64,000 bases of DNA, from positions 1-64,000 of the IMG/VR virus record IMGVR_UViG_3300023184_000025. The stretch is one strand, 5' to 3'. The notes beneath the pieces were generated by a model. That model saw only the letters and a list, made by a program, of their open reading frames with translations, was not told the DNA's origin and did not search any database. How positions within the stretch are numbered: position 1 is the first letter of the stretch; each line of letters begins with the position of its first letter. The translations under genes were made by a program, and so were the position numbers. Shown here piece by piece: positions 707 to 63,206 of this stretch.

Positions 707-1375
707 TTAATACACCAAACTATCTATACGTTTATATTTTATATTAAACGCATTCATTAATAATTCTACTTCACGCAGGCATTCGTCTCTGCCGCCACCA
801 ACCAAGTATGCACCATTAAAACGCTTTAGTTGACCAACACTGGCCCAGCCCACAGTCATTGGATCATCTTCCATTTCTTCTATGGCACCTTGAATCAAAC
901 TTTGTGTAGTAGTACGACGATTAAAGGCAGGGAACTCTAGGTCTCTAGTGTCAGAAACTTGTTGTGCGTACATTTCACGTATGGTTGCAATGATGGTACT
1001 TGGTTCTATTCCGTGATCCATCCAGCTACGGAGGTAGCCATAACCTTTGTCTACTATTTGAAAGCGACGCCAATCTACGGGACTTTTGGGCTCGTTGTAA
1101 TAGTCATCACCATTCTCGTCTTCGCCTTCTTCGCCTTCGGTTCCTAGTGTTTCGTCCCAGAATTGTTGTATCTGTTGAACGGAATCCCCACTCAGGCCTT
1201 GATCTTCAGCATTGACAAAGAACAGCACAGGACCAGTTTGCTTTTGTACAAAATTCATTATTTGAATAAACTTTGGATTGGCAGGTGGCCAGGGTCCGCC
1301 ATTGTATTCAGGTTGAACATCAACACAAATAACTGGCTGACTTAGGCCTTCAACAATAAAATCCTGTGCTCTCAT
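707..1375 (-). CDS. Cysteine hydrolase (isochorismatase/nicotinamidase-like) with capsid-targeting-like leader
   Basis: VICVDVQ (catalytic Asp), IVDKG (Lys) and LVGGGRDECL (Cys) match the D-K-C triad layout; N-terminus is MRAQDFIVE|G. Confidence 0.6.
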   Translation of the reverse strand: MRAQDFIVEGLSQPVICVDVQPEYNGGPWPPANPKFIQIMNFVQKQTGPVLFFVNAEDQGLSGDSVQQIQQFWDETLGTEGEEGEDENGDDYYNEPKSPVDWRRFQIVDKGYGYLRSWMDHGIEPSTIIATIREMYAQQVSDTRDLEFPAFNRRTTTQSLIQGAIEEMEDDPMTVGWASVGQLKRFNGAYLVGGGRDECLREVELLMNAFNIKYKRIDSLVY

Positions 1376-3462
1376 TACATTTTACCTGATGTCTTTAATG
1401 TAGGTGGTGTGCCAGCGGCAGTGGTATGCCAGCCCATTTTTTTGGCTTGGCGTTGTACTTCTCCGGGCTTGATGTCCACAGTTAAGGCCATACTGTAACG
1501 TGGATCACGAGCTTCCTGGTCATTAATGGGGATGTAGCCTGATGCTTCTGCTATTGGTTTTATTCTACTTAATTCGTACATGACTTTGTTGCCGGTGTCA
1601 GCACGGAAAGCACGGAAGCCCAAAGCCTTTGCATAACGCTGAACCAAACTGTCATACAGTCTTGCCCTGGTCATTGCTTTTCTTTGATCCTCATCTGGGT
1701 TAACTTCTTTTGAAGCCGAAAAGTATATTTTGTTGGGCTTGTATCTTCCCTTGGCGCCAGGCACCCTGTCAGAAACAAATGTTTGAACAGCACTTAACAC
1801 AGTGGCAAACACACGCTGTTGATCACCCTCGCCTGTTTTTTCTTGACTGTTGTTTCTATAAAACTCAACACTCCATGCTTCCTCTTTTGTATCTTGACTA
1901 AATCCCTTGGTAAACATGACACTTAGAAAGGTATTGTCATCTAATCGTGCTATTGCGTCTACATCACCATGGTCACCCTTTTCCCATCGAAGTATTTTAT
2001 AGGGTTGGTCTAATGATTCATTAACATCTTCGGGTACTACTTGCCCTTGGCGACGACGCAGATCATCTTTCATGCGCTGTAATAATTCTTCGCGAGCACC
2101 GGCAACGCCCATGTGCTTGATGGTCTGCGACGCACGCCCTATGGTTTGTATATCCTTGACTGTTTGTCCAACACCATTGGTGGTGGCGCAACCAGGTGTG
2201 CCGGCTATGCATGCTGCCGCAGCCACGGCTGCTAGTCGGTCTTTGACAGATTCCTCTAGTGGCATATCTTTAAAGAATTCTGGATACTGATCAACCCAGT
2301 GACGCATAATGCGGCCTGCCATGGCATTGGCTTCGTCTTCGTAAGGGGATCCTGTTTCACCTGCGTCCACAGGCATGTCAGCTAGTTCGTCTTGGCGAGC
2401 GTGTGTGAGCTCATGTGCTAGAGTACGCAAAATATCTAGCACATGACGGCCACTTACTGCCAGTGTAACTGAACGTGTTTCATGATCAAATTGACCGAAT
2501 GTGCCGTTTCTACGTGTCCATTCCGGGTCACGTTTTAATATGATTTTTGGGGCTTGTTCAATTCCGAGATACTCAACACAACTATCAATGAATGGTTGTA
2601 GTACTTGCTTAATGTCTTGATTAATGTCTGGAGATTCTGTGTTTTCTTGTACACTTTCGCCGCCACCATCGCCACCCTCGCTGTTGCCAAACGAGAATCC
2701 AGGCATCCAGTACCCACCATATCCGTAGCGTACTTTCTTTTTCTTGCGTTCTTGTAAACTTAGTTCATGATCTTTTGCGGCAAGCCTAGCTTCACGCAGT
2801 CGGTCAATCAAGCCGCTGGCCCTCAACAGTTTAAATGCTAGATTTTCTGGACCAAATTCTCCAGTATTGGCCAGGCCGGTTGTGCGCATTTCACGTATCT
2901 TTTTAGCCAGCAATTCCATGCGCTGTCTATCACCATCGGCAATGGCTGACTCAATTCTGCGTCCTAGATCTTCGTACTTGCTACGTGTGCTCATGTCATC
3001 AACCACAGCTTGTTGACGTTTTGGAACTTGTAGCCAGTCATTGTTCAACACTGAATACTCTCCTTGGCTTACTGGAGGTTGGTTGGCATTCTGTACATAT
3101 AACTCAACATCGTAGCCGCCAATTTTAAAATTGTGCTGATCGTTATACTGATATTTTTTAGCATCAAACAGTTCACGATAAACTTCGCTGGCATCAGCCT
3201 TGGGTAAATCTACTACCAAGTGTAGATCAATGTCTGAGTGTGGTGTATATGTGTAGGCGGCGTTTGAACCAGATATTGTGACGTCTTTTAGTTCAATGTC
3301 TGTTAGGCCAAGGAATTCACGGAAGTCATCCGCAATTGCCAATAGATGTTCACGAACATCAGGGAGAAGATTTTCGTCCTCTCCCCAAATGCGTGGGTTT
3401 AACTTGTCGTTAAACTTGATTGCGTTGCTTAAACGATAGGAATCTAGTTCATGAATGTTCAT
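1375..3462 (-). CDS. Multi-module polyprotein: Pol-beta-type nucleotidyltransferase + HExxH zinc metallopeptidase + further unknown modules
   Basis: ISGSNAAYTYTPHSDIDLH...VELY (GS, DxD, third acidic residue); LAHELTH...EDEANAMAG (zincin); modules separated by VQE|N, LEE|S, VNE|S and IAE|A. Confidence 0.75.
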   Translation of the reverse strand: MNIHELDSYRLSNAIKFNDKLNPRIWGEDENLLPDVREHLLAIADDFREFLGLTDIELKDVTISGSNAAYTYTPHSDIDLHLVVDLPKADASEVYRELFDAKKYQYNDQHNFKIGGYDVELYVQNANQPPVSQGEYSVLNNDWLQVPKRQQAVVDDMSTRSKYEDLGRRIESAIADGDRQRMELLAKKIREMRTTGLANTGEFGPENLAFKLLRASGLIDRLREARLAAKDHELSLQERKKKKVRYGYGGYWMPGFSFGNSEGGDGGGESVQENTESPDINQDIKQVLQPFIDSCVEYLGIEQAPKIILKRDPEWTRRNGTFGQFDHETRSVTLAVSGRHVLDILRTLAHELTHARQDELADMPVDAGETGSPYEDEANAMAGRIMRHWVDQYPEFFKDMPLEESVKDRLAAVAAAACIAGTPGCATTNGVGQTVKDIQTIGRASQTIKHMGVAGAREELLQRMKDDLRRRQGQVVPEDVNESLDQPYKILRWEKGDHGDVDAIARLDDNTFLSVMFTKGFSQDTKEEAWSVEFYRNNSQEKTGEGDQQRVFATVLSAVQTFVSDRVPGAKGRYKPNKIYFSASKEVNPDEDQRKAMTRARLYDSLVQRYAKALGFRAFRADTGNKVMYELSRIKPIAEASGYIPINDQEARDPRYSMALTVDIKPGEVQRQAKKMGWHTTAAGTPPTLKTSGKM

Positions 3463-4629: not shown

Positions 4630-5622
4630 TTACTTGTTTGTTTCATCAATATAGTCATTGTTTTCGCCAATGTCAATTTCTCGACCACGTGCAATTGGAC
4701 GTCTGCCTTGCTTGTCTGAGAAATCCTCCAACCTTGCCAACGCTTGAACTTTACTTTGCATGGCACCGGCTTTGTACATTAAATGTTCAACTCCTCGATA
4801 GTTACCAACTTTGAGCATTTCTGCTAACTCAACTAATTGTTTTACTAAACTGTTTTTAAGACTGCCTTCGTTCCAGGTTCCAAGTCCACCAGTGGGACGA
4901 ATTTGAACTCCGTCATCAGGATCATTGACCAGGGTAGCTTCGTCAACTTCTTTATCAGGACCGTTTGGCATTGGCATTCCTGCATTCAATCCTCCGGCTC
5001 CTACACCAAAGGCTGGGCCTTGTAGTGCTTCTTTTACATCATTGCCCATGCCTGCATCAATTAGTTTAGTTGTTACATTGGTTAACTTTTCGTTACCTTG
5101 GGTCTGTGGATACAGTGAATTAACCAATGAGGCTTTTTGTTCTGACGACATTGCAGGCCATTTAGCACGAATTTCTGTGGCACTGGTCATGCCTGAGCCA
5201 AACTGTACCACAGGCAAATATGCTATGTAAGCATGCTGAGTCATTGGCTGTAGACCTGTGCGCTTGTATGGTTGTAAGTAGCCAGCACTACCATCCTTTT
5301 TTACATCGCCTGGCACGGGCTGTTCGTTACGATCCTTTTCACTGCGTACAAAAATTAATTGTGTGCTACCAGGATCATAATGCTGTGTAATTTCATTGGC
5401 ACGGAAAGGACTTTTAACCTGAATAAATCTGTGTGCAGGAATGCCGGCTAATTTTGCTAGTTTTTGTTTGACTGCAAAAGGAAAAGGTCTTGTTGAAGTA
5501 TCTGCTGTGGCGGCAATATAAACGTCGGCACTAGGGAAAGCCGCTTGGGCCGAATCGTATAGAGCTTTATGGCCTGCGTGAAAGGGGTGGAAACCACCGG
5601 GCATAATGACTAGTTTTTTCAT
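4630..5622 (-). CDS. HxGH (cytidylyl/adenylyltransferase-like, NadD/CoaD superfamily) protein with C-terminal extension
   Basis: PGGFHPFHAGH and TSATEIR motifs; the C-terminal part is set off by VKE|A and VDE|A. Confidence 0.7.
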   Translation of the reverse strand: MKKLVIMPGGFHPFHAGHKALYDSAQAAFPSADVYIAATADTSTRPFPFAVKQKLAKLAGIPAHRFIQVKSPFRANEITQHYDPGSTQLIFVRSEKDRNEQPVPGDVKKDGSAGYLQPYKRTGLQPMTQHAYIAYLPVVQFGSGMTSATEIRAKWPAMSSEQKASLVNSLYPQTQGNEKLTNVTTKLIDAGMGNDVKEALQGPAFGVGAGGLNAGMPMPNGPDKEVDEATLVNDPDDGVQIRPTGGLGTWNEGSLKNSLVKQLVELAEMLKVGNYRGVEHLMYKAGAMQSKVQALARLEDFSDKQGRRPIARGREIDIGENNDYIDETNK

Positions 5623-6619: not shown

Positions 6620-7354
6620 TTATGCTTTTATTAAGGTTACAGTTTTTCTGACTGTGCTTGGACTCACAAGACTAAGCATACTTACAAAAGATTCGTGATC
6701 GTATTCTACAAAAAAGTTTCCATACAAATAACAGTACTCGTCTTTTTTTACCCAATGTGTAAGTGCAGGCCCTAATCTTATTTGCCCTTCGTAGTTTTTT
6801 AAGAAATTAACCAAATAACTTTTTTGTTGTTTGGTTATTTTTCTATCTTTAAAATATAAACGATAAGAATGCTTTGGATTTTTTAATCTAATGGTACCTT
6901 TTGCAAACGCTACATTAATCTGATATACGTGTACATTTTTTATAAACGGTAATTTGGATAATTCTTCTATATATTTTTTATTGTTGGTGTATAGATATCC
7001 ATAGCCGCCTGACTGTATTATTAGTCTTTTGGTATCCGATTCTAACGTATAAAAATTATAGAACGACAATAAATTTTCTTCTACTTCATCACCAATGGGC
7101 AATCCCTCTGATCGGCTGTGCCAGTTTCCTCCCCAATTAACGTGTCTTAGGTGATCTTTGAATTTTTTTCGTTGAGACAAGTTCCAAGAAATCATCTTAC
7201 GATCTTTATCAGGATCATTTTTTAAATTTCTTAGACAAGGTAATTCTTGAAGATAGAAAACAGCCCTATACTCAAATTGATCAAAGTATAGCTGGCTTGA
7301 ATTAACTACTTCAAACTCTGGGTTTGAATTGATCAAGGATAATGTATCCATCAC
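6620..7354 (-). CDS. Hypothetical protein
   Basis: 244-aa ORF downstream of clpA. Confidence 0.6.
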   Translation of the reverse strand: MMDTLSLINSNPEFEVVNSSQLYFDQFEYRAVFYLQELPCLRNLKNDPDKDRKMISWNLSQRKKFKDHLRHVNWGGNWHSRSEGLPIGDEVEENLLSFYNFYTLESDTKRLIIQSGGYGYLYTNNKKYIEELSKLPFIKNVHVYQINVAFAKGTIRLKNPKHSYRLYFKDRKITKQQKSYLVNFLKNYEGQIRLGPALTHWVKKDEYCYLYGNFFVEYDHESFVSMLSLVSPSTVRKTVTLIKA

Positions 7355-9602
7355 TATTAACTGTAGGTTGAGTTGTTTCTTGCACAGGCACGTTTATGTT
7401 TGTTTCAAAGTAAATTTCTCCATCCTTTACAACAACATTTATATTGCAATCAGCAAGACGGTCAAATAAAATTTTTCTACTTAACGGAACACGAATCAGC
7501 TCGTCAATTTTTCTACCCAATGGTCGAGCTCCCATTAATGGATCATATCCACGGTCAGCCAATAGTTCAACTGCTGGCTCTGTTAAAGTTAGTTTAATAT
7601 TTTTATTAACCAAACTAGTTTTTAGTTCATCGACAAATTTGATAACAATTTTCTTAATTGCTAGTTTATCAAGCTTGCCAAATTTACAGACTGCATCCAA
7701 GCGATTTCGTAATTCAGGTTTAAAAAACTCTTTAAAGGCACGATCATCTTCGCCAGTTTTTGCCATGTCTCCAAAGCCAATGTTATTACGTTCACTGTCA
7801 GCACTACCAAGATTACTGGTCATAATAACAATGGTATTTTTACAATCAACTGTTTTTCCGTTGCTACCTGTAATTTTTCCTTCATCAAGCAATTGTAGAA
7901 AGATGTTACTTACATCAGGGTGCGCTTTTTCTACTTCGTCAAATAATAATATCGAAAATGGGTGCTTGCTCAAGTCGCTAATTAATTTGCCACCACCAAG
8001 ATTGCCATCCTCAAACCCAACATAGCCTGGCGGTGCACCAATCAAACTTGATACAGTATGCTTTTCCTGATACTCACTCATGTCGTACTTGAGTAATGTC
8101 ATATCAAGGTATTCAGCCAACATACGTGCCAATTCAGTTTTACCTGTACCAGTTGGCCCCAAGAACAAGAAACTAGACATTGGTTTTCTTGTTGTATTAA
8201 TGCCAGCAAAACTTACATAGATACGATCTAGTACTGTGTCAATGACCTGGTCTTGACCGTATACTCGTTGTTTGATATTACTTTCAAGATCAATAATACG
8301 TGTGCTCTGTTGATTGGCCAAGTGATCCATTGGTACACCGGCAACACGACTGACCTGTTGCATAATTAACTCTTTTGTGACTGTTAATGTACCTGCATCC
8401 TTGACCCTTTCACGAGCACAGGCAGCATCAATTAAATCAATGCTTTTGTCGGGATTCTTTTTGTCATGAATGTAACGACCACTTAGTTCAACTGCTGATA
8501 TAATAGCATCTGTGTCAATCATCACATTGTGAAACTTTTCCAGTCGCGGACTGAGTCCAATAAGAATTTTTTCTGTAGTTTCTTTGTTTGGTTCGTCGAT
8601 ACTGAGTCGATAGAATCTACGCATCAACGCACGATCTTTTTCAAAGCTTTCGTAGTACTCTTCCCAGGTTGTGCTGGCCACAACTTTAAGTACACCTTTG
8701 GTAATTGCTGGCTTGATCATATTAGCAAAATCAAGCTGGCTTTGTCCTGAACTGCCTGCTCCACGCATGGTGTGTGCTTCGTCAATAAACAGCACACAAT
8801 TCTTTTTACTTTCTAATGCATCAATTACCTGTTTGAGTTTTTCTTCAAACTCGCCGCGATACTTTGATCCAGCTAGTAAACTTCCGATTTCCAAACTCCA
8901 CACTTCATGATCTCTAAGGAAACTAGGAACATCATTGTTGACAATTCGCTGTGCCAGGCCTTCAATGATGGCAGTTTTGCCCACACCCGGATCTCCTACC
9001 ATTAGCACGTTGGCTTTAAATCTACGTGCTAACACAGTGACCATTTCTTCAATGTCTTTTTCTCTGCCAATCACTGGTTCAAGTTGATCTTTTTTTGCCT
9101 GATCGGTAATGTTGGTACAATGTTCTTCAAGTATCTCTGTGGCCTGTTGATTGGTGATTTTAACATCGCCGTGTTTGTAATTCTGTTCCCAAAATTTTAC
9201 AAACTCTGCTTTTGTTACACCATATTTGAGCAAGAAGTAATGTGCATGACTATTGTTTTCACTCATAAGAGCAAGATAAAGATCAATGGTGGTAATTACT
9301 CGTCGACCGGTGAACAATACTTGTGTCAGCGCACGATTAAAAATACGTTCTAGTGCATTTGTTTTTCGAGGTTGTATATCTTCTTTACTACTGCGTAAGT
9401 TTGTCAAACTTTCTAGATACGCATTAAGTTCTGACTCAAGCATGTCTATTTCTAAACCAAAATTAATTAATACAGTTCTAAATGGATTGTATTGTAGCAA
9501 CGACAGTAGCAAATGCTCAGTTAACACATACTCGTGTTTTTTGTCTCGAGCAATTCTAACTGCCGCATCAATAATTTGTTCAATTTCGGGATTATTTTGC
9601 AT
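7311..9602 (-). CDS. clpA: ClpA-like Hsp100 AAA+ unfoldase
   Basis: Clp N-domain (EHLLL), two Walker A motifs (GDPGVGKT, GPTGTGKT), LFIDEAH, DMSEYQEKH, LIGAPPGYVG and a ClpP-docking IGF loop; no ClpB coiled-coil M-domain. Confidence 0.92.
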   Translation of the reverse strand: MQNNPEIEQIIDAAVRIARDKKHEYVLTEHLLLSLLQYNPFRTVLINFGLEIDMLESELNAYLESLTNLRSSKEDIQPRKTNALERIFNRALTQVLFTGRRVITTIDLYLALMSENNSHAHYFLLKYGVTKAEFVKFWEQNYKHGDVKITNQQATEILEEHCTNITDQAKKDQLEPVIGREKDIEEMVTVLARRFKANVLMVGDPGVGKTAIIEGLAQRIVNNDVPSFLRDHEVWSLEIGSLLAGSKYRGEFEEKLKQVIDALESKKNCVLFIDEAHTMRGAGSSGQSQLDFANMIKPAITKGVLKVVASTTWEEYYESFEKDRALMRRFYRLSIDEPNKETTEKILIGLSPRLEKFHNVMIDTDAIISAVELSGRYIHDKKNPDKSIDLIDAACARERVKDAGTLTVTKELIMQQVSRVAGVPMDHLANQQSTRIIDLESNIKQRVYGQDQVIDTVLDRIYVSFAGINTTRKPMSSFLFLGPTGTGKTELARMLAEYLDMTLLKYDMSEYQEKHTVSSLIGAPPGYVGFEDGNLGGGKLISDLSKHPFSILLFDEVEKAHPDVSNIFLQLLDEGKITGSNGKTVDCKNTIVIMTSNLGSADSERNNIGFGDMAKTGEDDRAFKEFFKPELRNRLDAVCKFGKLDKLAIKKIVIKFVDELKTSLVNKNIKLTLTEPAVELLADRGYDPLMGARPLGRKIDELIRVPLSRKILFDRLADCNINVVVKDGEIYFETNINVPVQETTQPTVNSDGYIILDQFKPRV

Positions 9603-22173: not shown

Positions 22174-22728
22174 TTATATACCAGCGGCGGCCTGTAGACT
22201 GCGAATATCTTTTTCGCGTTCAAAAATTTGTTTTGGTTGAATACCTGCGGCTATGCGCATTTCGTTTAGTCCTGACTCTTTTTCTTTACGATACAGTTTA
22301 GGACTTAGCGGAACTAAGCTATCAAATATTTCTTCAGTAAAAGGGTGCTCTTTTCCTTCGTAGCGCATGGTCCAGTCGTCAGGGCCAAACTCGGTGAGTG
22401 TACTTAAATCGTCAACTAACTCTGCTGTGTGCTTGCCAGAAGTACTACGTCTACGCATTTCTACGTAGACCAGATATCTACCGGCTTTGATTTCTCCTGG
22501 ACTGGTGTCTGAATCCAACACAAAGTCATAGCCTTTTTCAAACCAATTCACAAGATCCTTTGCGGCTTGTTTACTGCGAACAAAAAAGCTTAGTACAATA
22601 ATTTCGTCGTCGTCGCCCATTTTACTAGCAAATTCGTCCACGTGAATTGTGGGCTTCATCATGCCCTCTAGGTCCTTGTACTCAAGGCCTTCAAACAGCG
22701 GCTGGTTGTTGTGCATCTTGTCCTCCAA
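22174..22728 (-). CDS. Hypothetical phage late protein
   Basis: Acidic ORF coupled to the upstream gene; LFE|G near the N-terminus. Confidence 0.6.
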   Translation of the reverse strand: MEDKMHNNQPLFEGLEYKDLEGMMKPTIHVDEFASKMGDDDEIIVLSFFVRSKQAAKDLVNWFEKGYDFVLDSDTSPGEIKAGRYLVYVEMRRRSTSGKHTAELVDDLSTLTEFGPDDWTMRYEGKEHPFTEEIFDSLVPLSPKLYRKEKESGLNEMRIAAGIQPKQIFEREKDIRSLQAAAGI

Positions 22729-23281
22729 TTGCTGGTTGTTGTACGTCGTCTTGCCGGAATTCTTCTTGGTCTAGATCTTCTTCGTAGGCGCTGTCTAGAT
22801 CTTCTAGGTCAATTTGTTCGCCTTCCATCTCAATGGAGCCTGTGCGAATATCAGACATCAATGTCTTGGGCATGACTATTTCAACCAGCCATACTTTTTT
22901 ATCGATTAATCGTGCTTTGTGTGTACCAGGAATGAAATCATCGGGATCCTCAATTTTAATTGGAATCTTTATGTTTTTCTTCATGTATTTTACTTCGCAG
23001 TCAAAGGGAAGTAAACGACGAGCCCCACGTGGGTCGGGCATGAGTTTTTCAGGCCACATAAAAATACAGCCAACTTTGTATTTTCCGATAGTTGGACCTT
23101 GTACTAGTTCACCCAAAATCCAATTTTTAAATGCATAGATATCTAGCTCATCCAGCACACGTTCAAAGTCCAACAGGCTCAACAGACTACCTTCAGACAT
23201 GTAGATGTTTTTAATATTGTCGGCTACCAGCCAGTAATCACTGTGGTCTTTGAAGATATCTTTATCAAGTTTATTGCTCAT
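22691..23281 (-). CDS. Hypothetical phage late protein
   Basis: 196 aa with an MPDPRG motif and acidic tail; TAAATA 5 nt before the ATG. Confidence 0.65.
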   Translation of the reverse strand: MSNKLDKDIFKDHSDYWLVADNIKNIYMSEGSLLSLLDFERVLDELDIYAFKNWILGELVQGPTIGKYKVGCIFMWPEKLMPDPRGARRLLPFDCEVKYMKKNIKIPIKIEDPDDFIPGTHKARLIDKKVWLVEIVMPKTLMSDIRTGSIEMEGEQIDLEDLDSAYEEDLDQEEFRQDDVQQPAIGGQDAQQPAAV

Positions 23282-24225: not shown

Positions 24226-25212
24226 ATGATTAAAATAGACCAAATCCGTGCATTACACATTGAACTTAGTTCTCGTTGCAATGCACGATGTCCCATGTGT
24301 ATGCGTAACTACCGGGGCGTGGATTTTAATGGAGGGTATCCGTTGACTGAGTTGTCACTCAGTGATATTCAACACATATTCCCTTCACACTTTTTAAAAC
24401 AAATTAACCGTATTAACTTTAACGGAAATCTTGGAGATTTTAGTCTGGCCAGCGATGCGTTGGAAATAGTTGACTACTTTTTATCTAATAGTACTGCTCA
24501 AATACAGATTGAAACAAATGGTAGTACACGTTCTACTGCCTGGTGGCAGAAATTAAACAACCATCGAATTAAAGTATTATTTGCATTAGACGGACTCAAA
24601 GACACACACAATCTGTACCGTCAGAACACTGATTGGGAAAAAATAATAGATAATGCTGTGGCGTTAATCCAATCAGGCGGAAATGCTGTTTGGAAATTTA
24701 TTCCGTTTAAACATAACCAACATCAATTTAATAGTTGTCAGACACTGAGCCGTCAGTTGGGATTTTCAGATTTTACAGTACGAGATCAGGGACGTAATCA
24801 AGGACCGGTATTTACAAGAAACGGCGAGTTTAGTCATTGGCTTGGCGATGCACAATCTGACATACCCGATTCTAATGCTTTAATTGAAGATCATTTGACC
24901 TGGTTTGATTATAAAAAGAAAATTCCCTGGGTTAATGATAATGCACAAATAGATTGTGGCCATATAAAACAAAAAGAGATTTATATAGCTGCCGACGGAT
25001 CTGTGTATCCTTGTTGTTATCTGGGATATTTTCCAAAGACAATGCATCAACCAGGAAACAGTCAATTTAAAGATCTTGTCAAAGAAAACAATGCATTAGA
25101 ATACAGTCTAGAGCATTGCATTGATTGGTTTGACCAGGTAGAAAAAACCTGGACTTTACCCAGTGTGGCACAGGGTAAGTTGTATACGTGTGTTAGTGCC
25201 TGCGGACACTAA
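24226..25212 (+). CDS. Radical SAM protein with SPASM/twitch-like C-terminus
   Basis: CNARCPMC, ETNG, FALDG and ADGSVYPCC...C..ACG motifs. Confidence 0.88.
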   Translation: MIKIDQIRALHIELSSRCNARCPMCMRNYRGVDFNGGYPLTELSLSDIQHIFPSHFLKQINRINFNGNLGDFSLASDALEIVDYFLSNSTAQIQIETNGSTRSTAWWQKLNNHRIKVLFALDGLKDTHNLYRQNTDWEKIIDNAVALIQSGGNAVWKFIPFKHNQHQFNSCQTLSRQLGFSDFTVRDQGRNQGPVFTRNGEFSHWLGDAQSDIPDSNALIEDHLTWFDYKKKIPWVNDNAQIDCGHIKQKEIYIAADGSVYPCCYLGYFPKTMHQPGNSQFKDLVKENNALEYSLEHCIDWFDQVEKTWTLPSVAQGKLYTCVSACGH

Positions 25213-37106: not shown

Positions 37107-40100
37107 TTAACTGATTGCGATCCAACCGTAACGCACAGTTTGAGCACTACCGCTGGTGTTATTGATACCAAAGTCAAATCTATTGGTTGTTGCACTTGGC
37201 GCGGTATTACTGCGAACTATGGCATTTGCTGTACCTACAAACTGATTGGGTATGCTGGTAAAGTCAATGGGTGTGCCGCCGCCGTTGTAGACCCAGGCAT
37301 ACTGATAACCCACAACAGGCACATTGGTATTAGTAACAGTAGCCGTGGCGTTCCAAACCAAGATACCATTGGGAATATTGCAATCAACCCACATTTGATA
37401 GGTCTCGTTGATACCCACAGTGAAACTTTGAGTGCTGTTGCCTGTAGGCACAGTCCAAGTGCTTGAAAACCTTGTGACCGCATCCACTGGTGTGTTGTTG
37501 GCATAGTTTACGGCAAATGTGTTGCCGGGCAAAGTCAAGTTGCCGGTGTTGTTAAATGTCCAATTGTATGAACCGGCTACTAGGGTCACATTGGCGCTGG
37601 TTCCTTGAACATTGCCTGTGATACTAATATTACCAATCAAGTTGCCGGCTGTGATGTTGCCTGTAGTACTAATAGTATTGCTACCATATGCAGCCAAGAA
37701 TGTGGCCACATTGGCATTGCCGTAACTTGCGGCTATACCAGTTAGTTGTGATCCGTTACCAATAAAAAAGTTACCAGAAACATTGGCGGTTGTTGTAATA
37801 TTACCAGTTGAGCTGATTGGATTTGAGCCAAGTGCAGCCAAGTTGGCTACCACATTAGCATTGCCATATGTGGCTGGTAATCCAGTAAGTTGACTGCCGT
37901 TACCAATAAAGTAGTTGCCAGTGACGTTGCCTGTGGCCGAGATCAAACCATTTGTTAATATGTTACCACCAGTGATGTTGCCAGAGGAGGGCTCAACAGT
38001 GGCATAGTTTACATACTTTATGACGCCATCATAGGTCATTATACTCATGGCACCGTTGGAGGTGATATCTTGTGTGACTACAGGAGCCGGCAAGTTAGTC
38101 AATTCACTGCCGTTGCCTTTAATGTAAGCACCGGTGACATTGCCTGTAGCACTGATGTTGCCAGGCGCTGCCAAGTTACCACTAGCACCAAACACCCAAG
38201 TGTTGCCACCGGTTTCAATATTGACATGGCCTTCGTTGGCTTGACCATTGCCTGAAGCACCGCCCCAGATATTGACATTGCCACCGGTTGCGGTACCATA
38301 CCCACCGTATATTTTTACATCGCCACCTATGGTGTTACCTTGACCGCCGGTTACATTAACATATCCACCCACAGTATTACTGTAACCGCCGGTGATATCA
38401 ATATAACCTGGGTTGCCACCGGTAGTGGCTGCATCGCCTGCTTCCATACGAATGTATCCGCCTGAACCACCTGCACCACCTACTGTGTTTGCACCACCTT
38501 GACCACCACGAATTTTAATGTCTCCGCCTGAACCACTAGCATTGCCACCACGTCCGGCCCATAAGTAGATGTCACCACCTTCACCACCTTGATAACCTTC
38601 GCCTGGATTAATTACTAGTCGCTGACTACTATCACCATTAATACCGAGTACACCATCCGGTGTTGAAATGATTGCTTCTTGTGTGGCATTGCCAAACAAT
38701 AATGTTTGGCCGCTAATTGTGCCACTTGGATTGTCACCGCGCTGTGTAGTTAATGTTGGGAATATGGTTTCACCAGCCGCACCAAATGTCCAGTTGGACT
38801 CTACAAAGTTGTTGTTGCCTTGATTGCCCAGTACATTATATTGGGTCAGTCTAAATGTTGCCGCACCATTGCCAGCAGTCATGGTGATCACATCACCGTC
38901 CTGATAGTTTCCATCACCTGGATTGATAACTGAAGCATTGACCACCTGACCACTTAGGCCATAACCATACGCCACTGTGAGTCCTGTACCCGAACCGCCA
39001 GTGGTGGCTGAAAAACTGCCACCACCACCATAACCACTGCCACCGGTCAGTATGGTGCAGATGTTGAATTGTCCACCGGCTGTTAAGGTCAATCCTTCTA
39101 GGTTGACTACCCTGCCAGTGGTGTCAAATGTCCACTGCGCTGAGTTGCCCACATTATCATTGCTGTTGATCACAACATTGCCGGTGTTGGCCAGCTTGAC
39201 ATACAAGTTATCGTTGCCCAGGAACAGTTCAGTGTTGTACAAGTTACCCGAGGTCAAGTGCAAGTGATTGGCATCAGCGGTAGGATCAGCCGTTGGATAA
39301 ATCAACAACTGTTGATCAGTACTGGTTCCGCCCTGTGGTGTTAAGGCAATGGTATTGCCAGACAATACACCTCCAGGAATATTGGTTTCATAAACTATGC
39401 CACCCCGTGGTAGAGTTAAATTACCGTCGTATTCAAACGTCCAAGTATAAGGGGTTCCCGCATCAGATTGTATAGAAACCTTGCCATCAACATTGACAGC
39501 GACATTGGCACCTGTATCACGGCCAATGATGACATTTTCACCGTTGCCGGCAATATGAATGTCTGGGCCTGCACCACCCGTTAAGAAGATATCTAAATAA
39601 GCACTGGCATTAGCAGGATCTGGCTGTAAACGCAAGTTACCATCACCAATGATGTTGACGTCATCAAAGGTCACATTGCCGGTGTCGGCAGTTGAGATGC
39701 CAGTGAGTTGACTACCGTTGCCAAGGAAATAATCCGCAGTGACGTTGCCTCGAGTCTCTATGTCCCCGATCACATTGAGTCCGTCTTGGATGGTCACAAA
39801 CGAACTGTCATCACTGCTGATGTTATTGGTAATGATAGTGGATGCAGTAACGGTACCATCTGTGCTGATTACCAAAGGAATAGTACTTGCTGTTCTGTTC
39901 CGGACACTGAAGTCGTTGCTGCCATTGCCTAGGATACCAAAGTCCCATTGTTGGGTTGCATTTGCTTGGTCCTGAACTGACATGTAAGCACTACGGGGTG
40001 TGTTGTAGTTGTCATCATAGCCAACCACTGTTATACCCGGTCCGGCAACGATATCAAAATCTGTACTTTCCACTCTTGGTGTGTTGACTGTCACATAAGA

Positions 40101-40766
40101 CGTGTAGTCAACTCTTGGTTGATAAGCTGTGGTGCCGTTGACGTTCAATAAACCATCACTGTCAAATTGCATAGTGCTATAGGTATCGCCCGGTGTGCCG
40201 CCTTGGTTACTAAACCCCTCCAGCCAGTTTATCTGTACTGCTCCGTTGTTTCCAGTAGGAACTCCATACGGACTACCATTGGCATAGAAATAGTCATCTG
40301 TATAAATTGCCCCGGCTCGTAGTACATTGTCAATGGCATCAACCATTATGGTGCTGTCATCTGCAAACACACTACCTTTTAAATCCCCAACAAAAACGTT
40401 GCTGGTGTAACTGATATTTCCTGCTGACAAGTTTCCTGTAATTGTCACGTTGCCGTCAATGTTTAGGCCGGTAAAATAACCTGTACGATATCGTAGATTT
40501 GCGCTGCCAATGTCATACACCTGTGACACACCAGGGCGAACATGATTTCTAGTAGAAATTACACCTGTGCCGTTGGTGGCCAACTCTAAATTACCGTTGG
40601 TATTGGTAACTTGTATGGTGTTGTTGAGTATGGTAATGTTTGAGCCAACAGGACCGGTGGCCCAGATTTGGTCAAAATTATTGTCGGTTTTTATGAATGC
40701 TACACGTAACGGATCACCTGTGCCGTCGTTGGGTGCGGCTCCGTAATTGATAATTTCTTGGGACAT
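37107..40766 (-). CDS. Long tail fibre / adhesin
   Basis: gp9/10-like N-terminus (PNDGTGDPLR.AF.K..NNF); repeats GNGSQLTG, YGNANV, WTF..G and Gly-rich GG.v.I.GG. Confidence 0.82.
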   Translation of the reverse strand: MSQEIINYGAAPNDGTGDPLRVAFIKTDNNFDQIWATGPVGSNITILNNTIQVTNTNGNLELATNGTGVISTRNHVRPGVSQVYDIGSANLRYRTGYFTGLNIDGNVTITGNLSAGNISYTSNVFVGDLKGSVFADDSTIMVDAIDNVLRAGAIYTDDYFYANGSPYGVPTGNNGAVQINWLEGFSNQGGTPGDTYSTMQFDSDGLLNVNGTTAYQPRVDYTSYVTVNTPRVESTDFDIVAGPGITVVGYDDNYNTPRSAYMSVQDQANATQQWDFGILGNGSNDFSVRNRTASTIPLVISTDGTVTASTIITNNISSDDSSFVTIQDGLNVIGDIETRGNVTADYFLGNGSQLTGISTADTGNVTFDDVNIIGDGNLRLQPDPANASAYLDIFLTGGAGPDIHIAGNGENVIIGRDTGANVAVNVDGKVSIQSDAGTPYTWTFEYDGNLTLPRGGIVYETNIPGGVLSGNTIALTPQGGTSTDQQLLIYPTADPTADANHLHLTSGNLYNTELFLGNDNLYVKLANTGNVVINSNDNVGNSAQWTFDTTGRVVNLEGLTLTAGGQFNICTILTGGSGYGGGGSFSATTGGSGTGLTVAYGYGLSGQVVNASVINPGDGNYQDGDVITMTAGNGAATFRLTQYNVLGNQGNNNFVESNWTFGAAGETIFPTLTTQRGDNPSGTISGQTLLFGNATQEAIISTPDGVLGINGDSSQRLVINPGEGYQGGEGGDIYLWAGRGGNASGSGGDIKIRGGQGGANTVGGAGGSGGYIRMEAGDAATTGGNPGYIDITGGYSNTVGGYVNVTGGQGNTIGGDVKIYGGYGTATGGNVNIWGGASGNGQANEGHVNIETGGNTWVFGASGNLAAPGNISATGNVTGAYIKGNGSELTNLPAPVVTQDITSNGAMSIMTYDGVIKYVNYATVEPSSGNITGGNILTNGLISATGNVTGNYFIGNGSQLTGLPATYGNANVVANLAALGSNPISSTGNITTTANVSGNFFIGNGSQLTGIAASYGNANVATFLAAYGSNTISTTGNITAGNLIGNISITGNVQGTSANVTLVAGSYNWTFNNTGNLTLPGNTFAVNYANNTPVDAVTRFSSTWTVPTGNSTQSFTVGINETYQMWVDCNIPNGILVWNATATVTNTNVPVVGYQYAWVYNGGGTPIDFTSIPNQFVGTANAIVRSNTAPSATTNRFDFGINNTSGSAQTVRYGWIAIS

Positions 40767-40826
40767 GCGCCTAGATCCTTTTGGTTTGAAGTATTTACCG
40801 CAAACCTGCGCATGTTAGAGTTACAG

Positions 40827-41147
40827 TTAAACGCTAAAACTTGACCCGCATCCACAGGTTGTAGCGGCCTGTGGGTTATTGATCACAAAACTACTGCCCC
40901 ATTCGTTTTCATCAAAGCGAATTTCGCATTCTTGCATGTAGGTCATTGACATAGAGTCAACCACAATAGTTAAATCGTCAAACTTGAAATCAAAATCGTC
41001 TTCATTTTGTTCTTCATCAAAGGTAAATCCGTATTGAAAACCCGAGCATCCTCCACCTTGCACAAACACACGGAATTTGAGGTTGGGATTGTTTTCTTCT
41101 AGTTTTAACTCTTTGAGCCGAGTAACTGCTGATTCTGATATGTTCAT
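40827..41147 (-). CDS. erpA: A-type Fe-S cluster carrier (ErpA/IscA)
   Basis: GGGCSGFQYGF and NP.A.TTCGCGSSF motifs. Confidence 0.9.
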   Translation of the reverse strand: MNISESAVTRLKELKLEENNPNLKFRVFVQGGGCSGFQYGFTFDEEQNEDDFDFKFDDLTIVVDSMSMTYMQECEIRFDENEWGSSFVINNPQAATTCGCGSSFSV

Positions 41148-41159
41148 AATGTATGTATA

Positions 41160-41708
41160 TTATAGGCGTTGGTTGCAAACGTCCCAGTCAATGATCTTCC
41201 AGATATTGTCTAGGTACTTTTCTTTATCACTTTGATAGTCCAGAGCCCAAACATGCTCCCACCAATCCACCAACACACAGATGTCTGTGCGTACTGCATG
41301 ATTGGCAATGGTCTTGATATCTCCCCCAGTGCTCAAGTAGACCCAACCAGATCCTTGAATCTTCATTGCAGTTTCCTTAAAAGCTTCTCGAAAATCTTCA
41401 TAGGTTTTAAACTTTTCTTCTATCAGCGCAAGCACAGCGCCACGAGGGCGGTTGGCACCTTTTGGAGCTCGAAGCTGAGGGAAAAACTTGTTGTGTAAAA
41501 AACTGCCAGCACGATTAAAATCCGCATTACCTTCTCCTGCGTTGTAACGCTTGGCGTAGCCTCGGGCCAGGTGTCCATAATGGTATTCTAAGCTTTCTTT
41601 ACTCAGCACTGGCTCAAGGTCTTTTTCGCCGTAAGGTAAAGGAGTAGTTTCCAGCTTGGCCGGACGGGTGCTGGCTTCCACAAGATTGATGTGATCACGT
41701 AATTCCAT
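41160..41708 (-). CDS. Fe/Mn superoxide dismutase (compact) with extra N-terminal leader
   Basis: LPY..LEP, EYH, LHN, QGSGW and DWWEH (all four metal ligands present). Confidence 0.88.
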   Translation of the reverse strand: MELRDHINLVEASTRPAKLETTPLPYGEKDLEPVLSKESLEYHYGHLARGYAKRYNAGEGNADFNRAGSFLHNKFFPQLRAPKGANRPRGAVLALIEEKFKTYEDFREAFKETAMKIQGSGWVYLSTGGDIKTIANHAVRTDICVLVDWWEHVWALDYQSDKEKYLDNIWKIIDWDVCNQRL

Positions 41709-41716
41709 ATATGTAT

Positions 41717-41965
41717 TTACCGGCGTCGAGTGATACGCCCACGTGTGAGATCATATGGACTAAACTCTACTTCTACTGTGTCGCCTAGTAGAATTTTAAT
41801 GTTATGTTGTCGCATTTTTCCTGAAATTACGCCTGTTACAGGCTGTTCCATGTGTGCAAGTTTTACTCTAAACATTGCATTGGGCAACACGTCGATCACT
41901 TGCCCATCTATTTTAAAACCTTCTTCTTTAGCCACTTTTTGAAATATTTCCTTTTTAGTAAACAA
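41717..41965 (-). CDS. infA: Translation initiation factor IF-1
   Basis: KEE....G.V...LPNAMFRV.L...[24 protein letters not shown]. Confidence 0.93.
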
Positions 41966-41973
41966 TTACTTAT

Positions 41974-42807
41974 TCAAATTTCCACCAGCATTGGTTTCCA
42001 ATGCTCAGCTCTATCTTCGTAGTCAATATATCCACGTGGGTTACACACAACTCTAGTAGACCCAATCATGTAGTCAAAATCTTCATGAGTATGCCCATGT
42101 GTCCACAGTTTAATCTGCGGATGATCCAGGATAAACTCATCTAGACTACTGCTATAGGCTCCATTCATGAGAGTCTGATCAGCGTATTTTTCATGTGTGC
42201 TCATGCGACTGGGTGCCATGTGTCCCACAACTACAAATTTTGTGTCATGTTTTTCTGCCACAACTGATCTAATGTAGCCCACACTTTTTTTGTGTGCCTG
42301 TGCCACGTGTGCAGGGCGCAAGGTAGTAAATCCAAGATCACTGTTGCGAATGATCTTAAAATCGTTCATCATGTCAGCTACAGCATGCAAGGTAAGAGGA
42401 TCTCCGTTGTTCATGTCAGTCCACAATGTGGCACCAATAAAGGTAACATCGTTGATGGTTTTGCAGTCGTTTTCCATAAAGTACACATTGGGAAACTTGG
42501 CACATTCTTCTCGTAGGTATTGTAGACCAATGGGCCACTTGCCATGATAGAATTCGTGGTTACCTGCAATGTAGACCACATGCGGAAACTGAAAACTGCA
42601 ACGCTTTAAGAAGTCACGAAACCGTTGTGCGGCCACTTGCCTGCTTCCCAGTGACACTAGTGGATTGATACTATCTTCGGGATGATCATGTAGATCCTGC
42701 GCTAACATGATGTCGCCACCGAGGATCAGAACTTCAGCATTGTGCTCATTCTTGATCATACAATCACCAAACTCAAGATGAATATCGCTGGTTACATAAA
42801 TTTTCAT
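41974..42807 (-). CDS. Calcineurin-like metallophosphoesterase
   Basis: SDIHLE, GGDI, AGNHE, H..P, HGHTH and NPRGY motifs. Confidence 0.9.
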   Translation of the reverse strand: MKIYVTSDIHLEFGDCMIKNEHNAEVLILGGDIMLAQDLHDHPEDSINPLVSLGSRQVAAQRFRDFLKRCSFQFPHVVYIAGNHEFYHGKWPIGLQYLREECAKFPNVYFMENDCKTINDVTFIGATLWTDMNNGDPLTLHAVADMMNDFKIIRNSDLGFTTLRPAHVAQAHKKSVGYIRSVVAEKHDTKFVVVGHMAPSRMSTHEKYADQTLMNGAYSSSLDEFILDHPQIKLWTHGHTHEDFDYMIGSTRVVCNPRGYIDYEDRAEHWKPMLVEI

Positions 42808-44109: not shown

Positions 44110-44943
44110 TTACTGGTCAACTGGTATTTTACAAACCGGAATTGGTTCCATTTTGTGCAAATTTCGGGCACGTATAGCACGGTATGCTTTGAGCTTTTTC
44201 TTTTCTTGTGTATTATCAACACCTGAATTGGTTTCTGCCTGTGTCATAGCCAACTCTAATTCCGGATAAGTCATGCCCAATTGATCTTCATCTGTGCGGC
44301 CATCTGTCCATAATCCGTCTGTGGGTGCCGCATCAATAATTTCCTGAGGCAAACCAAATTCACGACCCATGTCCCACACCGCAGTTTTCATGCAGTCACC
44401 AATTGGGCTGATATCCACTCCACCATCGCCGTATTTGGTAAAGAATCCCACACCAAAGTCTTCTACACGATTACCTGTGCCCACTACAATACCACCATGG
44501 CTTTGTGCAATTTGGTACAAGGTCATCATGCGCAGTCTAGCACGTGAGTTGGCAAATGCAAGATTAACCCTTTGTTCATCTACATTTTCTCTACAGTAGG
44601 GTATGAGATTTTTTTCAAATGAATCAAAAACTTTGGTCAAGTCCATGCTCATGTGTGTGACTGTTTCCTTGTGGCGTTCCAGCAACCAATCTGCCTGCAT
44701 TGAGCTACAATTATCTAGTTTCTTGTTTTGCCTAATTGGCATTTGTACCACAATGGTTCGGAGTCCGGTGTTGGCACAAAGTGCGCTGACAACTGAGCTG
44801 TCAATGCCTCCTGAAATACCAACAACTAAAGTATCAACTTTGGCACTACGAGCGTAGTCTTTGATCCACTTGGTAATGTGTTTAATGCGTTGCTTGGGTG
44901 TCATTCGATCTCCGGTGGTGGCATGCTCTTGAGTGTATCCCAC
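44110..44943 (-). CDS. nadE: NH3-dependent NAD+ synthetase
   Basis: VGISGGIDS, N.RARLRM, VVGTGN, GFFTKYGDGGVD, PTDGLW and DEDQLG motifs. Confidence 0.92.
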   Translation of the reverse strand: MGYTQEHATTGDRMTPKQRIKHITKWIKDYARSAKVDTLVVGISGGIDSSVVSALCANTGLRTIVVQMPIRQNKKLDNCSSMQADWLLERHKETVTHMSMDLTKVFDSFEKNLIPYCRENVDEQRVNLAFANSRARLRMMTLYQIAQSHGGIVVGTGNRVEDFGVGFFTKYGDGGVDISPIGDCMKTAVWDMGREFGLPQEIIDAAPTDGLWTDGRTDEDQLGMTYPELELAMTQAETNSGVDNTQEKKKLKAYRAIRARNLHKMEPIPVCKIPVDQ

Positions 44944-62546: not shown

Positions 62547-63206
62547 ATGGAATTCTCCGCTACTAATTGGTTGACTTGGCAACGTGCTTCTAATGCTGTT
62601 AATTTTTTGGATCCACCATTTAGATTAGGCAACTATTATCCAGATTGGTTCAAAAATCTTAAAGCTGACGTTAGACATTACTTGCCCCAAGGTCATATGC
62701 AAAATAACACAGCCCGGGTATGTTTAGGCTTACGTGGTATCAATAGTGTGGGATGGACCATCATTGATCCAAAGTACCCATACATTGGCGGCGCCGTGGT
62801 ATTCCATCCTGAGCAGTTACATGGTACCAAGTGGTGCGAAAAAGATTCTTCTGGTGAATATGTTTGGAAAATAGTCCTTAATGCATTACCCTGGAGAGCA
62901 AAAATGGCTCCAGGATGGAGATTGATTGTTGGAGATTATCCATTGGCATTCAGTGAGGATTGGCATACATTTTCAGGTTGTGTGGATGCAAACTACAAGA
63001 TCAATGATGATGGCCAATTGGGATCCTTTTACAAATATGATGAGCCCATTGACCCCAACTTTAACTATTACAATATTGAATCAGTGATGGCTGTTAAACA
63101 GCACATGGTTGCTACTCCATCAGGAGCTGTGACTTTTTCAATCATTCCATATTATGATCCTGATTATCAGGCACCGATGTTCAAAGGCTATCCAAGTCTT
63201 GATTAA
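62547..63206 (+). CDS. Hypothetical protein
   Basis: 219 aa; PDWFK...C.G pattern; TAAATA 7 nt before the ATG. Confidence 0.6.
   Translation: MEFSATNWLTWQRASNAVNFLDPPFRLGNYYPDWFKNLKADVRHYLPQGHMQNNTARVCLGLRGINSVGWTIIDPKYPYIGGAVVFHPEQLHGTKWCEKDSSGEYVWKIVLNALPWRAKMAPGWRLIVGDYPLAFSEDWHTFSGCVDANYKINDDGQLGSFYKYDEPIDPNFNYYNIESVMAVKQHMVATPSGAVTFSIIPYYDPDYQAPMFKGYPSLD

Follow-up and report, generated by a model that had tools for sequence, protein, structure and literature searches.

Why would a bacteriophage carry a superoxide dismutase (SOD) with extra residues at its N-terminus, and does this enzyme act in the infected cell or travel in the virus particle? The question is raised by a 182-codon open reading frame on the minus strand, at positions 41160-41708 of a 64,000-nucleotide stretch of viral DNA (referred to here as the window). 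The original prediction for this locus was of a SOD with a possible capsid-targeting leader, packaged in the virion. We find that the frame encodes a compact Fe/Mn SOD. We describe it as a late-expressed enzyme that is plausibly targeted to the phage head, a description to which we give an even chance of being right.

A freshwater jumbo phage with a T4-like head

The window comes from a 262,308-bp IMG/VR record (G000) that is estimated to be 76% complete. This record is 100% identical to a 345,154-bp genome (G001) but lacks positions 124,363-207,256 of the latter; coordinates in the window are also those of G001. The head and tail module of G001 lies within the missing 83 kb, which hold the portal, a 72-aa core protein, an acidic core protein, the prohead protease, the scaffold and the major capsid protein. 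This is why no prohead protease or capsid protein was found in the G000 record itself. In G001 the prohead protease is a Peptidase_S77 enzyme of the T4 gp21 type (E = 6.5e-25 and 3.9e-24), and the major capsid protein is of the T4 gp23 type (Gp23, E = 3e-100). A prohead protease is also present in all eight of the complete or near-complete relatives tested, as well as in PA5oct and in Vibrio phage 2.275.O.

Metagenomes of freshwater and lakes from several studies contain the phage DNA, a habitat that fits an earlier remark about sunlit water. The SOD family itself is abundant: 2373 protein clusters belong to it, and it is found on 274 viral contigs. A megablast search with the 10 kb around the SOD gene gave no match among isolated phages. 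In short, the source is a freshwater jumbo myophage (345 kb) with a T4-like head.

The SOD gene and its neighbours are as follows:

41717..41965, minus strand: infA (translation initiation factor IF-1), the upstream neighbour (PF01176, E = 1.7e-20)
41714..41719, minus strand: TAAATA box, resembling the -10 element of a late promoter; it lies 5 nt ahead of the SOD ATG, and infA uses its TAA as stop codon
41160..41708, minus strand: SOD coding sequence, 182 aa, precursor of 21.0 kDa
40827..41147, minus strand: ErpA/IscA-like Fe-S cluster carrier, the downstream neighbour (PF01521, E = 9.1e-17), without a TAAATA of its own
40792-40800, minus strand: GGTAAATAC box of the fibre-like gene, 25 nt before its ATG
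37107..40766, minus strand: fibre-like structural gene coding for 1219 aa, beyond the Fe-S carrier, with a box of its own and a Shine-Dalgarno site

A compact Fe/Mn superoxide dismutase

The core of the protein is a compact Fe/Mn-type SOD of 163 aa. Pfam detects both domains, Sod_Fe_C (PF02777) with E = 3.7e-21 and 75.5 bits against a gathering cut-off of 20.9, and Sod_Fe_N (PF00081) with 29.6 bits against a gathering cut-off of 27. The best phmmer match in the PDB is Bacteroides fragilis SodFM2 (E = 2e-24), and 150 other SODs score similarly. An AlphaFold2 model, for which 35 homologues served as input, has a mean pLDDT of 92.8. Foldseek places this model with cambialistic and archaeal Fe/Mn SODs (TM 0.80-0.84, E about 1e-13), and the two-domain SOD fold is seen in both the model and the Foldseek matches. 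PHROGs has no family for the SOD.

When the protein is aligned to SODs of the PDB, H43, H72, D148 and H152 fall on canonical H26, H73, D156 and H160 (also numbered His26, His73/81, Asp156/167 and His160/171). These four ligands are invariant in 35 diverse homologues, and the earlier statement that all of them are kept is therefore correct. The residues of the metal site and its surroundings are:

41580..41582, minus strand: His43 codon, metal ligand 1 (canonical H26), from the PDB alignment and homologues
41568..41570, minus strand: Leu47 codon, at the gateway His30 position in the PDB SOD alignment; Leu is invariant in the phage family
41493..41495, minus strand: His72 codon, metal ligand 2 (canonical H73), from the PDB alignment and homologues
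41298..41300, minus strand: His137 codon, at the A-N-Q position of the Mn-type second-sphere Gln; invariant, and placed by motif rather than from coordinates
41265..41267, minus strand: Asp148 codon, metal ligand 3 (canonical D156), from the PDB alignment and homologues
41256-41258, minus strand: Glu151 codon, the invariant dimer-bridging Glu that precedes His152
41253..41255, minus strand: His152 codon, metal ligand 4 (canonical H160), from the PDB alignment and homologues

A conserved N-terminal leader

The SOD starts about 17 residues ahead of the canonical SOD start. Its canonical segment begins at residue 18, where K-L-E-T-T-P-L-P-Y aligns to the usual F-x-L-P-x-L-P-Y start segment. The N-terminal addition contains the following features:

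41676..41708, minus strand: leader codons 1-11, ending L9-V10-E11, recognised by conservation in homologues, synonymous codons and a predicted helix
41676-41678 and 41673-41675, minus strand: codons of E11 and A12, between which a protease cut is predicted
Product if cut after E11: 171 aa, 19.7 kDa

In the AlphaFold2 model a helix is predicted at residues 2-14 with a pLDDT of about 70. The first 11 residues would form a short amphipathic helix, with hydrophobic residues at P9, P5, P3 and P2 and an arginine at P8.

In order to ask whether these residues matter we turn to the homologues. All 120 of the close homologues (82-95% identity) have an open frame with an ATG 8-15 codons ahead of an invariant Glu. 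Their leaders vary in length and sequence around the pattern hydrophobic-R-x-x-I-[N/D]-L-[V/I/L]-E, followed by A. Among 77 distinct leaders the P1 residue is E in every case, P3 is L or I in 76 and P8 is R in 65, and P1' is A in 116 of the 120 sequences. Of the remaining positions, P9 takes I, L or M, P5 either I or L, P4 one of N, D and E, and P2 one of V, L and I, while P7 is polar; the codons right after the leader ATG are the most variable part. The 55 distinct DNA versions use five codons for the P3 leucine (CTA, CTT, CTG, TTA and TTG), four for the P8 arginine (CGT, CGC, CGA and AGA) and four Ala codons at P1'. The leader residues are kept through synonymous changes, therefore the constraint acts on the protein.

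The motif reaches well beyond the close homologues. We aligned seven close and 20 distant homologues (the latter at 37-57% identity), and [LIV]-x-E lies in the first 10-18 residues of all 26 homologues aligned with the window protein. The extra N-terminus ending in [ILV]-x-E that was noted from the window alone, which is L-V-E at residues 9-11 and then A12, is therefore a conserved feature of the family.

Two other readings of this region were considered and rejected. The first is an alternative start at a GTG at codon 10, a codon that is GTG in just 7 of the 55 DNA versions. The second is a secretion signal; on reading, the leader has no hydrophobic core.

One homologue illustrates that the leader can be absent. 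The SOD of Vibrio phage 2.275.O begins at the canonical point, with stop codons upstream and no leader, which indicates that the leader is a separable module that is not needed for folding of the SOD core. This phage carries a prohead protease yet has a leaderless SOD, an observation that speaks against packaging.

A late-promoter-like element upstream of the SOD gene

The original prediction credited the SOD with its own TAAATA late box. This proves to be one instance of a genome-wide signal. No hexamer is more enriched than TAAATA in the 50 nt upstream of genes in this genome, and 79 of its 224 copies fall in the 3.3% of the sequence that lies just upstream of genes (p = 3e-58). The distance between box and ATG is bimodal. 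In 35 genes the box is 2-9 nt before the ATG without a ribosome-binding site, where about 1.2 would be expected from the hexamer frequency, and in approximately 32 genes it is 15-29 nt before the ATG with a Shine-Dalgarno site in between. The SOD box sits at the modal spacing of 5 nt. The portal gene and a head core gene are among those with the close spacing, and sheath, fibre and core genes among those with the far one.

The box is also conserved. In 78 of 80 related loci TAAATA lies 4-5 nt before the leader ATG of the SOD, whatever the length of the leader, and the same layout is found before the SOD in a distant, PA5oct-like clade. The constant spacing across leader lengths indicates that the start codon is fixed and that the box travels with the gene. 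We considered the possibility that the box is just the infA stop codon followed by an AT-rich spacer; the k-mer enrichment, the spacing and the conservation all reject it, and in just 7 of the 35 close-spaced cases does the box coincide with the stop codon of a preceding gene. Nor is the signal an artefact of ORF calling, since it peaks at distances (4, 5 and 7 nt) that are out of frame.

Which genes carry the box? In G001 it precedes 18 of 37 homologues of PA5oct virion proteins, compared with 56 of 414 other genes (OR 6.1, p = 1.6e-6). In PA5oct itself the corresponding figures are 35 of 90 particle proteins and 34 of 358 others (OR 6.1, p = 3e-10). TAAATA is also found ahead of non-structural genes, and about half of the box-bearing genes in PA5oct encode particle proteins. 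The box of the SOD is thus part of an enriched, conserved signal that is associated with virion genes. From the conservation of the box and its tie to virion genes, we infer that the SOD is expressed late. Searches of RNA sequencing runs did not find the phage.

Late promoters of T4 have the form TATAAATA, and transcription begins about six bases further downstream. With a T4-like spacing, the SOD transcript would start at the A of the ATG. A late-type box in this position may thus give an mRNA that starts at or beside the ATG and is leaderless or nearly so, and a translational role for the box is possible. The ErpA/IscA-like gene has no TAAATA of its own and is therefore probably co-transcribed with the SOD. 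More generally, TAAATA with its two spacings is a working marker for late genes in this phage, and it suggests that many late messages are leaderless.

When is the leader motif informative?

An [LIV]-x-E motif is easily found by chance. It ends at residues 8-25 in 26% of the ORFs of this genome, compared with 20-26% for interior windows. Among 93 PA5oct particle proteins the bare N-terminal motif is not enriched (OR 1.2-1.3, p = 0.3-0.4), nor is a T4-like leader pattern (OR 1.2, p = 0.49), and the five-residue pattern of the SOD family is weakly enriched (OR 3.4, p = 0.08). The bare motif alone has no predictive power. In one single sequence the leader motif is not significant, but its conservation is.

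We therefore compared orthologues in five genomes of the phage group. Of 205 families, just 24 have the N-terminal [LIV]-x-E in every member. Such conserved motifs occur in 4 of 6 head-module proteins compared with 19 of 198 others (OR 19, p = 0.0016). For proteins homologous to a virion or prohead protein of PA5oct the count is 9 of 28, compared with 14 of 176 for the others (OR 5.5, p = 0.001). The capsid protein, scaffold, protease and acidic core protein have [LIV]-x-E sites where T4 biology predicts them. Unlike the bare motif, an [LIV]-x-E that is conserved across relatives enriches for head proteins, and may be a useful aid for annotation.

Some other proteins of the phage closely match the leader of T4 IPIII, with an M-K-T-F start, an aromatic P4, L or I at P3 and E at P1. 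One protein with such a T4-like leader is a homologue of a PA5oct virion protein, and a T4-like-leader protein at 22174-22716 of the window matches a PHROG whose annotation is virion structural protein. The leader of the SOD departs from the T4 targeting spacing, in which P7 and P4 are hydrophobic or aromatic: its P4 is N or D and its P7 is polar. It resembles the leaders of PA5oct gp380 and gp381, both of which are particle proteins. The spacing of the SOD leader, unlike that of IPIII and of the clearer T4-like leaders of this phage with their aromatic P4, is an observation against packaging.

The proposal of a capsid-targeting leader therefore survives in part. The leader is translated, is under selection at the protein level and has a conserved L/I-x-E followed by A, and an S77 protease is encoded in the genome; the spacing known from T4 is not there.

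A homologue detected in PA5oct particles

PA5oct is a phage whose host is a Pseudomonas. Its homologue is EST35_0261 (QCG76142.1), which is annotated as a hypothetical protein and bears the GenBank note 'ESI-MS/MS'. This note marks proteins detected in purified PA5oct particles (PMC7318152). The PA5oct particle list also has RNR, ThyA, ClpP, FtsH, ligase and MazG. These are cytoplasmic enzymes, so the detection of the SOD is weak evidence, and an abundant late enzyme could be a contaminant. The SOD protein is not named in either preprint version of the PA5oct paper, and there is no mention of it in the MIJ3 and Callisto papers.

The two proteins are alike in many respects. EST35_0261 is likewise a compact SOD of 182 aa, with 37% identity to the window protein, identical ligands and the same replacements by Leu and His. 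It has a 13-residue leader ending I-A-E before an A (residues 11-14), and its own promoter region contains TAAATA. The differences are in the layout of the locus. In PA5oct about 25 nt separate the box from the ATG, and the order is terminator, TATAATAAATAA stretch, ribosome-binding site and ATG. The neighbours are ClpS and FtsH, not infA and erpA.

Packaging or a cytoplasmic role

We infer the following course of events. A SOD made late, from a message with little or no 5' leader, would be directed by its leader into the scaffolding core of the prohead, in the manner of a T4 capsid-targeting propeptide. The gp21-type serine protease (S77) of the phage would cut it after Glu11. The mature SOD, starting at Ala12, would stay in the DNA-filled head and enter the host with the DNA, as an active enzyme. 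More speculatively, it might protect the DNA in the particle or at injection; a late role in the cytoplasm alongside the neighbouring Fe-S carrier is just as plausible.

Much of this route has a precedent in T4. The cleavage specificity of gp21 is L/I-X-E (PMC9026906), a 10-residue leader is sufficient for targeting, and foreign enzymes can be packaged and delivered by this route (PMC9026906, PMC3012670). When the Glu of the T4 leader is changed to Asp, processing is blocked but targeting is not (PMC9026906). For the SOD, packaging is supported by the pattern of the leader, the tie of TAAATA to virion genes, the S77 protease and the mass spectrometry note in PA5oct. On the boldest reading, a widespread family of jumbo phages of freshwater and of Pseudomonas would load a working SOD by means of a short cleavable propeptide and inject it with the genome; we rate its chances as slightly below even. 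A complex prediction for the protease and SOD residues 1-40 gave a score of 0.00, run without controls, and speaks neither for nor against binding. A further observation against packaging is that a dimeric metalloenzyme would need to be unfolded in order to pass the tail.

The genomic neighbourhood suggests another role for the SOD. The genes around it are infA, the Fe-S carrier, a metallophosphoesterase and NadE, not structural genes; Pfam confirms both infA and erpA, the neighbours named at the outset. In PA5oct and in a third clade the SOD gene lies among ClpX, S21, HSP20, ClpS, FtsH and ligase. A setting of translation and proteostasis genes instead of structural ones is an observation against packaging. 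The SOD could be a late auxiliary enzyme of the cytoplasm, unpackaged, that together with the ErpA/IscA-like carrier protects or rebuilds Fe-S enzymes in the infected cell. Its N-terminal helix would stay on and serve in oligomer contact, partner binding or stability, and the detection in PA5oct particles would be carry-over. We consider this main rival possible, though on the doubtful side. The pairing with an Fe-S carrier in both position and probable transcript suits it, as do the proteostasis genes of the other clades, and the phage encodes radical-SAM and other Fe-S enzymes. It also accommodates the many cytoplasmic enzymes on the PA5oct particle list, the lack of predictive power of the bare motif, the presence of TAAATA before non-structural genes and the leaderless homologue in the Vibrio phage. 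What it leaves unexplained is that the sole invariant residues of the leader are those read by a gp21-type protease (P3 L/I, P1 E and P1' A), and that these are fixed while the length of the leader varies from 8 to 15. Nor does it account for the enrichment of conserved N-terminal [LIV]-x-E motifs in prohead and virion proteins.

Packaging, if confirmed, would have several implications. The virion would deliver an antioxidant enzyme ahead of any phage gene expression. The capsid-targeting propeptides of large T4-like phages would carry metabolic enzymes, and not just anti-restriction proteins. It would also suggest that oxidative stress at infection matters enough in lakes for a phage-borne defence. 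As the family has a cultured member, PA5oct, these ideas can be tested at the bench.

Is the enzyme a working dismutase?

Packaged or not, the protein may differ in chemistry from typical SODs. The outer-sphere residues of canonical enzymes are the gateway pair His30 and Tyr34, Gln69 or Gln146, and the bridging Glu. The phage protein retains Tyr34 (Y51) and the bridging Glu (E151), and has Leu at His30 (L47) and His137 where the Mn-type has Gln. Canonical Tyr163, the cross-dimer partner of His30, is replaced by Ala, Met, Ile, Leu or other non-Tyr residues in the SOD family. Compared with 192-aa SODs, about 20 residues are missing from the helical hairpin and about 9 from the sheet region.

These changes could mean that the SOD fold has been turned to weak or altered chemistry, as a poor dismutase, in metal binding or delivery, or in some other redox reaction, in the particle or outside it. 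The invariance of L47 and H137, the loss of the partner Tyr and the 20-residue deletion that shortens the helical hairpin all fit this explanation. The first rate constant of human MnSOD is 1.5, compared with about 0.005 for its H30V mutant, in which most activity is lost (PMC9208312). Against it, the Gln-to-His mutant of C. elegans MnSOD retains about half of its activity and is active with either metal (PMC9208312). The ligands, Y51, E151, the conserved Trp residues and the G-S-G-W motif are also invariant over the 35 diverse members, which argues for a working metal site. We regard altered chemistry as unlikely. Given the published mutants at His30 and Gln, catalytic activity is likely but not certain, judged from the aligned residues. 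In either case, the invariant His30-to-Leu and Gln-to-His changes are a natural variant of interest for the mechanism of SODs.

Finally, the conserved gene start might serve the mRNA and not the protein, for example as 5' codons for leaderless translation, as the little or no 5' untranslated region implied by TAAATA-N4-5-ATG would allow, but this is very improbable and already disfavoured by conserved positions that switch codon freely while keeping the amino acid and by first codons past the ATG that are the most variable.

Comparison with known systems

SOD genes in phages and capsid-targeting leaders in T-even phages are both already known. In our literature search we came across neither a phage Fe/Mn SOD described as having a propeptide-like leader nor a packaged phage SOD.

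The closest parallel is with the internal proteins and Alt of T4. Like the SOD, these have a short leader (10 residues in IPIII, 8-15 in the SOD) with L/I-x-E and then a small residue. The genomes of T4 and of the phage of the window each encode both a protease of the gp21 family (Peptidase_S77) and a capsid protein of the gp23 type, and in both a late-type element with a TAAATA core lies upstream. The cargo in T4 can be an enzyme, as with Alt, and the SOD would likewise be one. The hydrophobic targeting positions differ: they are P7 and P4 (and P3) in IPIII, and P9 and P5 (and P3 and P2) in the SOD leader. The typical T4 cargo is a small basic anti-restriction protein, whereas the SOD is a conserved metalloenzyme. 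In the SOD the N-terminal part of the leader varies and the cargo is conserved, and in T-even phages the reverse is true. Processing of the T4 leaders is known from experiment; that of the SOD is proposed here on the basis of sequence.

Among cellular enzymes, the cambialistic and archaeal SODs of P. gingivalis (1QNN/1UES), B. fragilis (SodFM2, 8AVL) and A. pernix (3AK2) are like the phage SOD in fold (TM 0.80-0.84) and in having all four metal ligands, Tyr34 and the bridging Glu. Compared with these, the phage protein is shorter by about 20 residues in the hairpin and by about 9 in the sheet region, has Leu at His30 and has gained a 17-residue N-terminus.

A precedent for the packaging of a SOD comes from a virus of eukaryotes. 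The Cu/Zn SOD A245R of chlorovirus PBCV-1 is late and virion-packaged, and lowers superoxide early in infection (PMC7019647). Like the phage SOD as proposed here, A245R is virus-encoded, late and packaged. It differs in being a Cu/Zn enzyme of an unrelated family from a eukaryotic giant virus, and in having no propeptide-and-protease loading route. The Cu/Zn SOD of Megavirus is a similar case. If the packaging model is correct, the SOD described here would be a first for bacteriophages, in parallel with the packaged Cu/Zn SODs of giant algal viruses.

Upstream motifs and transcription

Across the complete 345,154-bp genome G001, whose numbering coincides with that of the window over 1-64000, 35 genes carry a TAAATA box 2-9 nt 5′ of the ATG and have no Shine-Dalgarno site, where about 1.2 would be expected; this close spacing suggests that many late transcripts of the phage are leaderless. 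A second class in G001 has the box 15-29 nt upstream of the gene, together with a Shine-Dalgarno site. Examples of TAAATA-preceded genes in the window are:

1375-3462, TAAATA-preceded gene
4630-5622, TAAATA-preceded gene
22691-23281, TAAATA-preceded gene
24226-25212, TAAATA-preceded gene
62547-63206, TAAATA-preceded gene

An identical 9-mer, GGTAAATAC, lies upstream of both the superoxide dismutase (SOD) gene and a gene for a 1219-aa fibre-like protein:

41714-41722 (-), SOD copy, 5 nt before the ATG
40792-40800 (-), fibre-like gene copy, 25 nt upstream of the start codon and accompanied by a Shine-Dalgarno site

Of the 13 copies of GGTAAATA in the whole genome, 9 are found directly upstream of genes. 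Another motif, TGCTATAAT(A), is also enriched in the upstream regions of G001, with 15/34 copies genome-wide directly 5′ of genes. It resembles a sigma-70 promoter of the extended -10 type, and probably represents the early or middle promoter class.

Genome record and gene content

The window's own record is a rotated copy of G001 that lacks 83 kb (G001 124,363-207,256), including the entire head and tail module; when the two are compared, a 48-nt junction has no alignment. The major capsid gene (L106:13248-14465, G001 193248-194465, minus strand) lies beyond the window, and the window's record does not contain it. In G001 this gene has a single in-frame TAA, at codon 302; its counterparts in two relatives, G002 and G003, have no in-frame TAA. 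Possible explanations for the codon are a sequencing error, a population variant and readthrough.

The window is abundant in host-like genes:

7311-9602 (-), ClpA/B-type ATPase (PHROG 4871, E 1e-238)
24226-25212 (+), radical-SAM enzyme
41717-41965 (-), IF-1
41974-42807 (-), metallophosphoesterase
44110-44943 (-), NAD synthetase

In relatives, the surroundings of the SOD hold ClpX, S21, HSP20, ClpS, FtsH and ligase.

Leader-bearing proteins

Several small proteins of unassigned function have leaders closely resembling the capsid-targeting sequence of T4 IPIII (M-K/R-x-x-x-aromatic-I/L-x-E):

window 707-1375 (-), IPIII-like leader
window 22174-22716 (-), IPIII-like leader
L104:18692-19291 (-), IPIII-like leader
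L104:14382-14771 (-), IPIII-like leader
G001 154768-155142, adjoining ORF, IPIII-like leader

One is a homologue of a virion protein of Pseudomonas phage PA5oct, and one matches PHROG 13138, ‘virion structural protein’. These are candidate internal or ejected proteins.

PA5oct itself has three adjacent small genes, gp380, gp381 and gp382 (record positions 260677-262300), with SOD-like leaders (hydrophobic-N-L-x-E at residues 6-10); two of the three products are particle proteins by mass spectrometry. The SOD homologue of Vibrio phage 2.275.O (L002:4968-5537) has no N-terminal leader. Its C-terminus is instead extended by about 25 residues, which include L-D-E|S. In T4, gp21 and Alt are also processed at their C-termini, but one motif of this kind is expected by chance.
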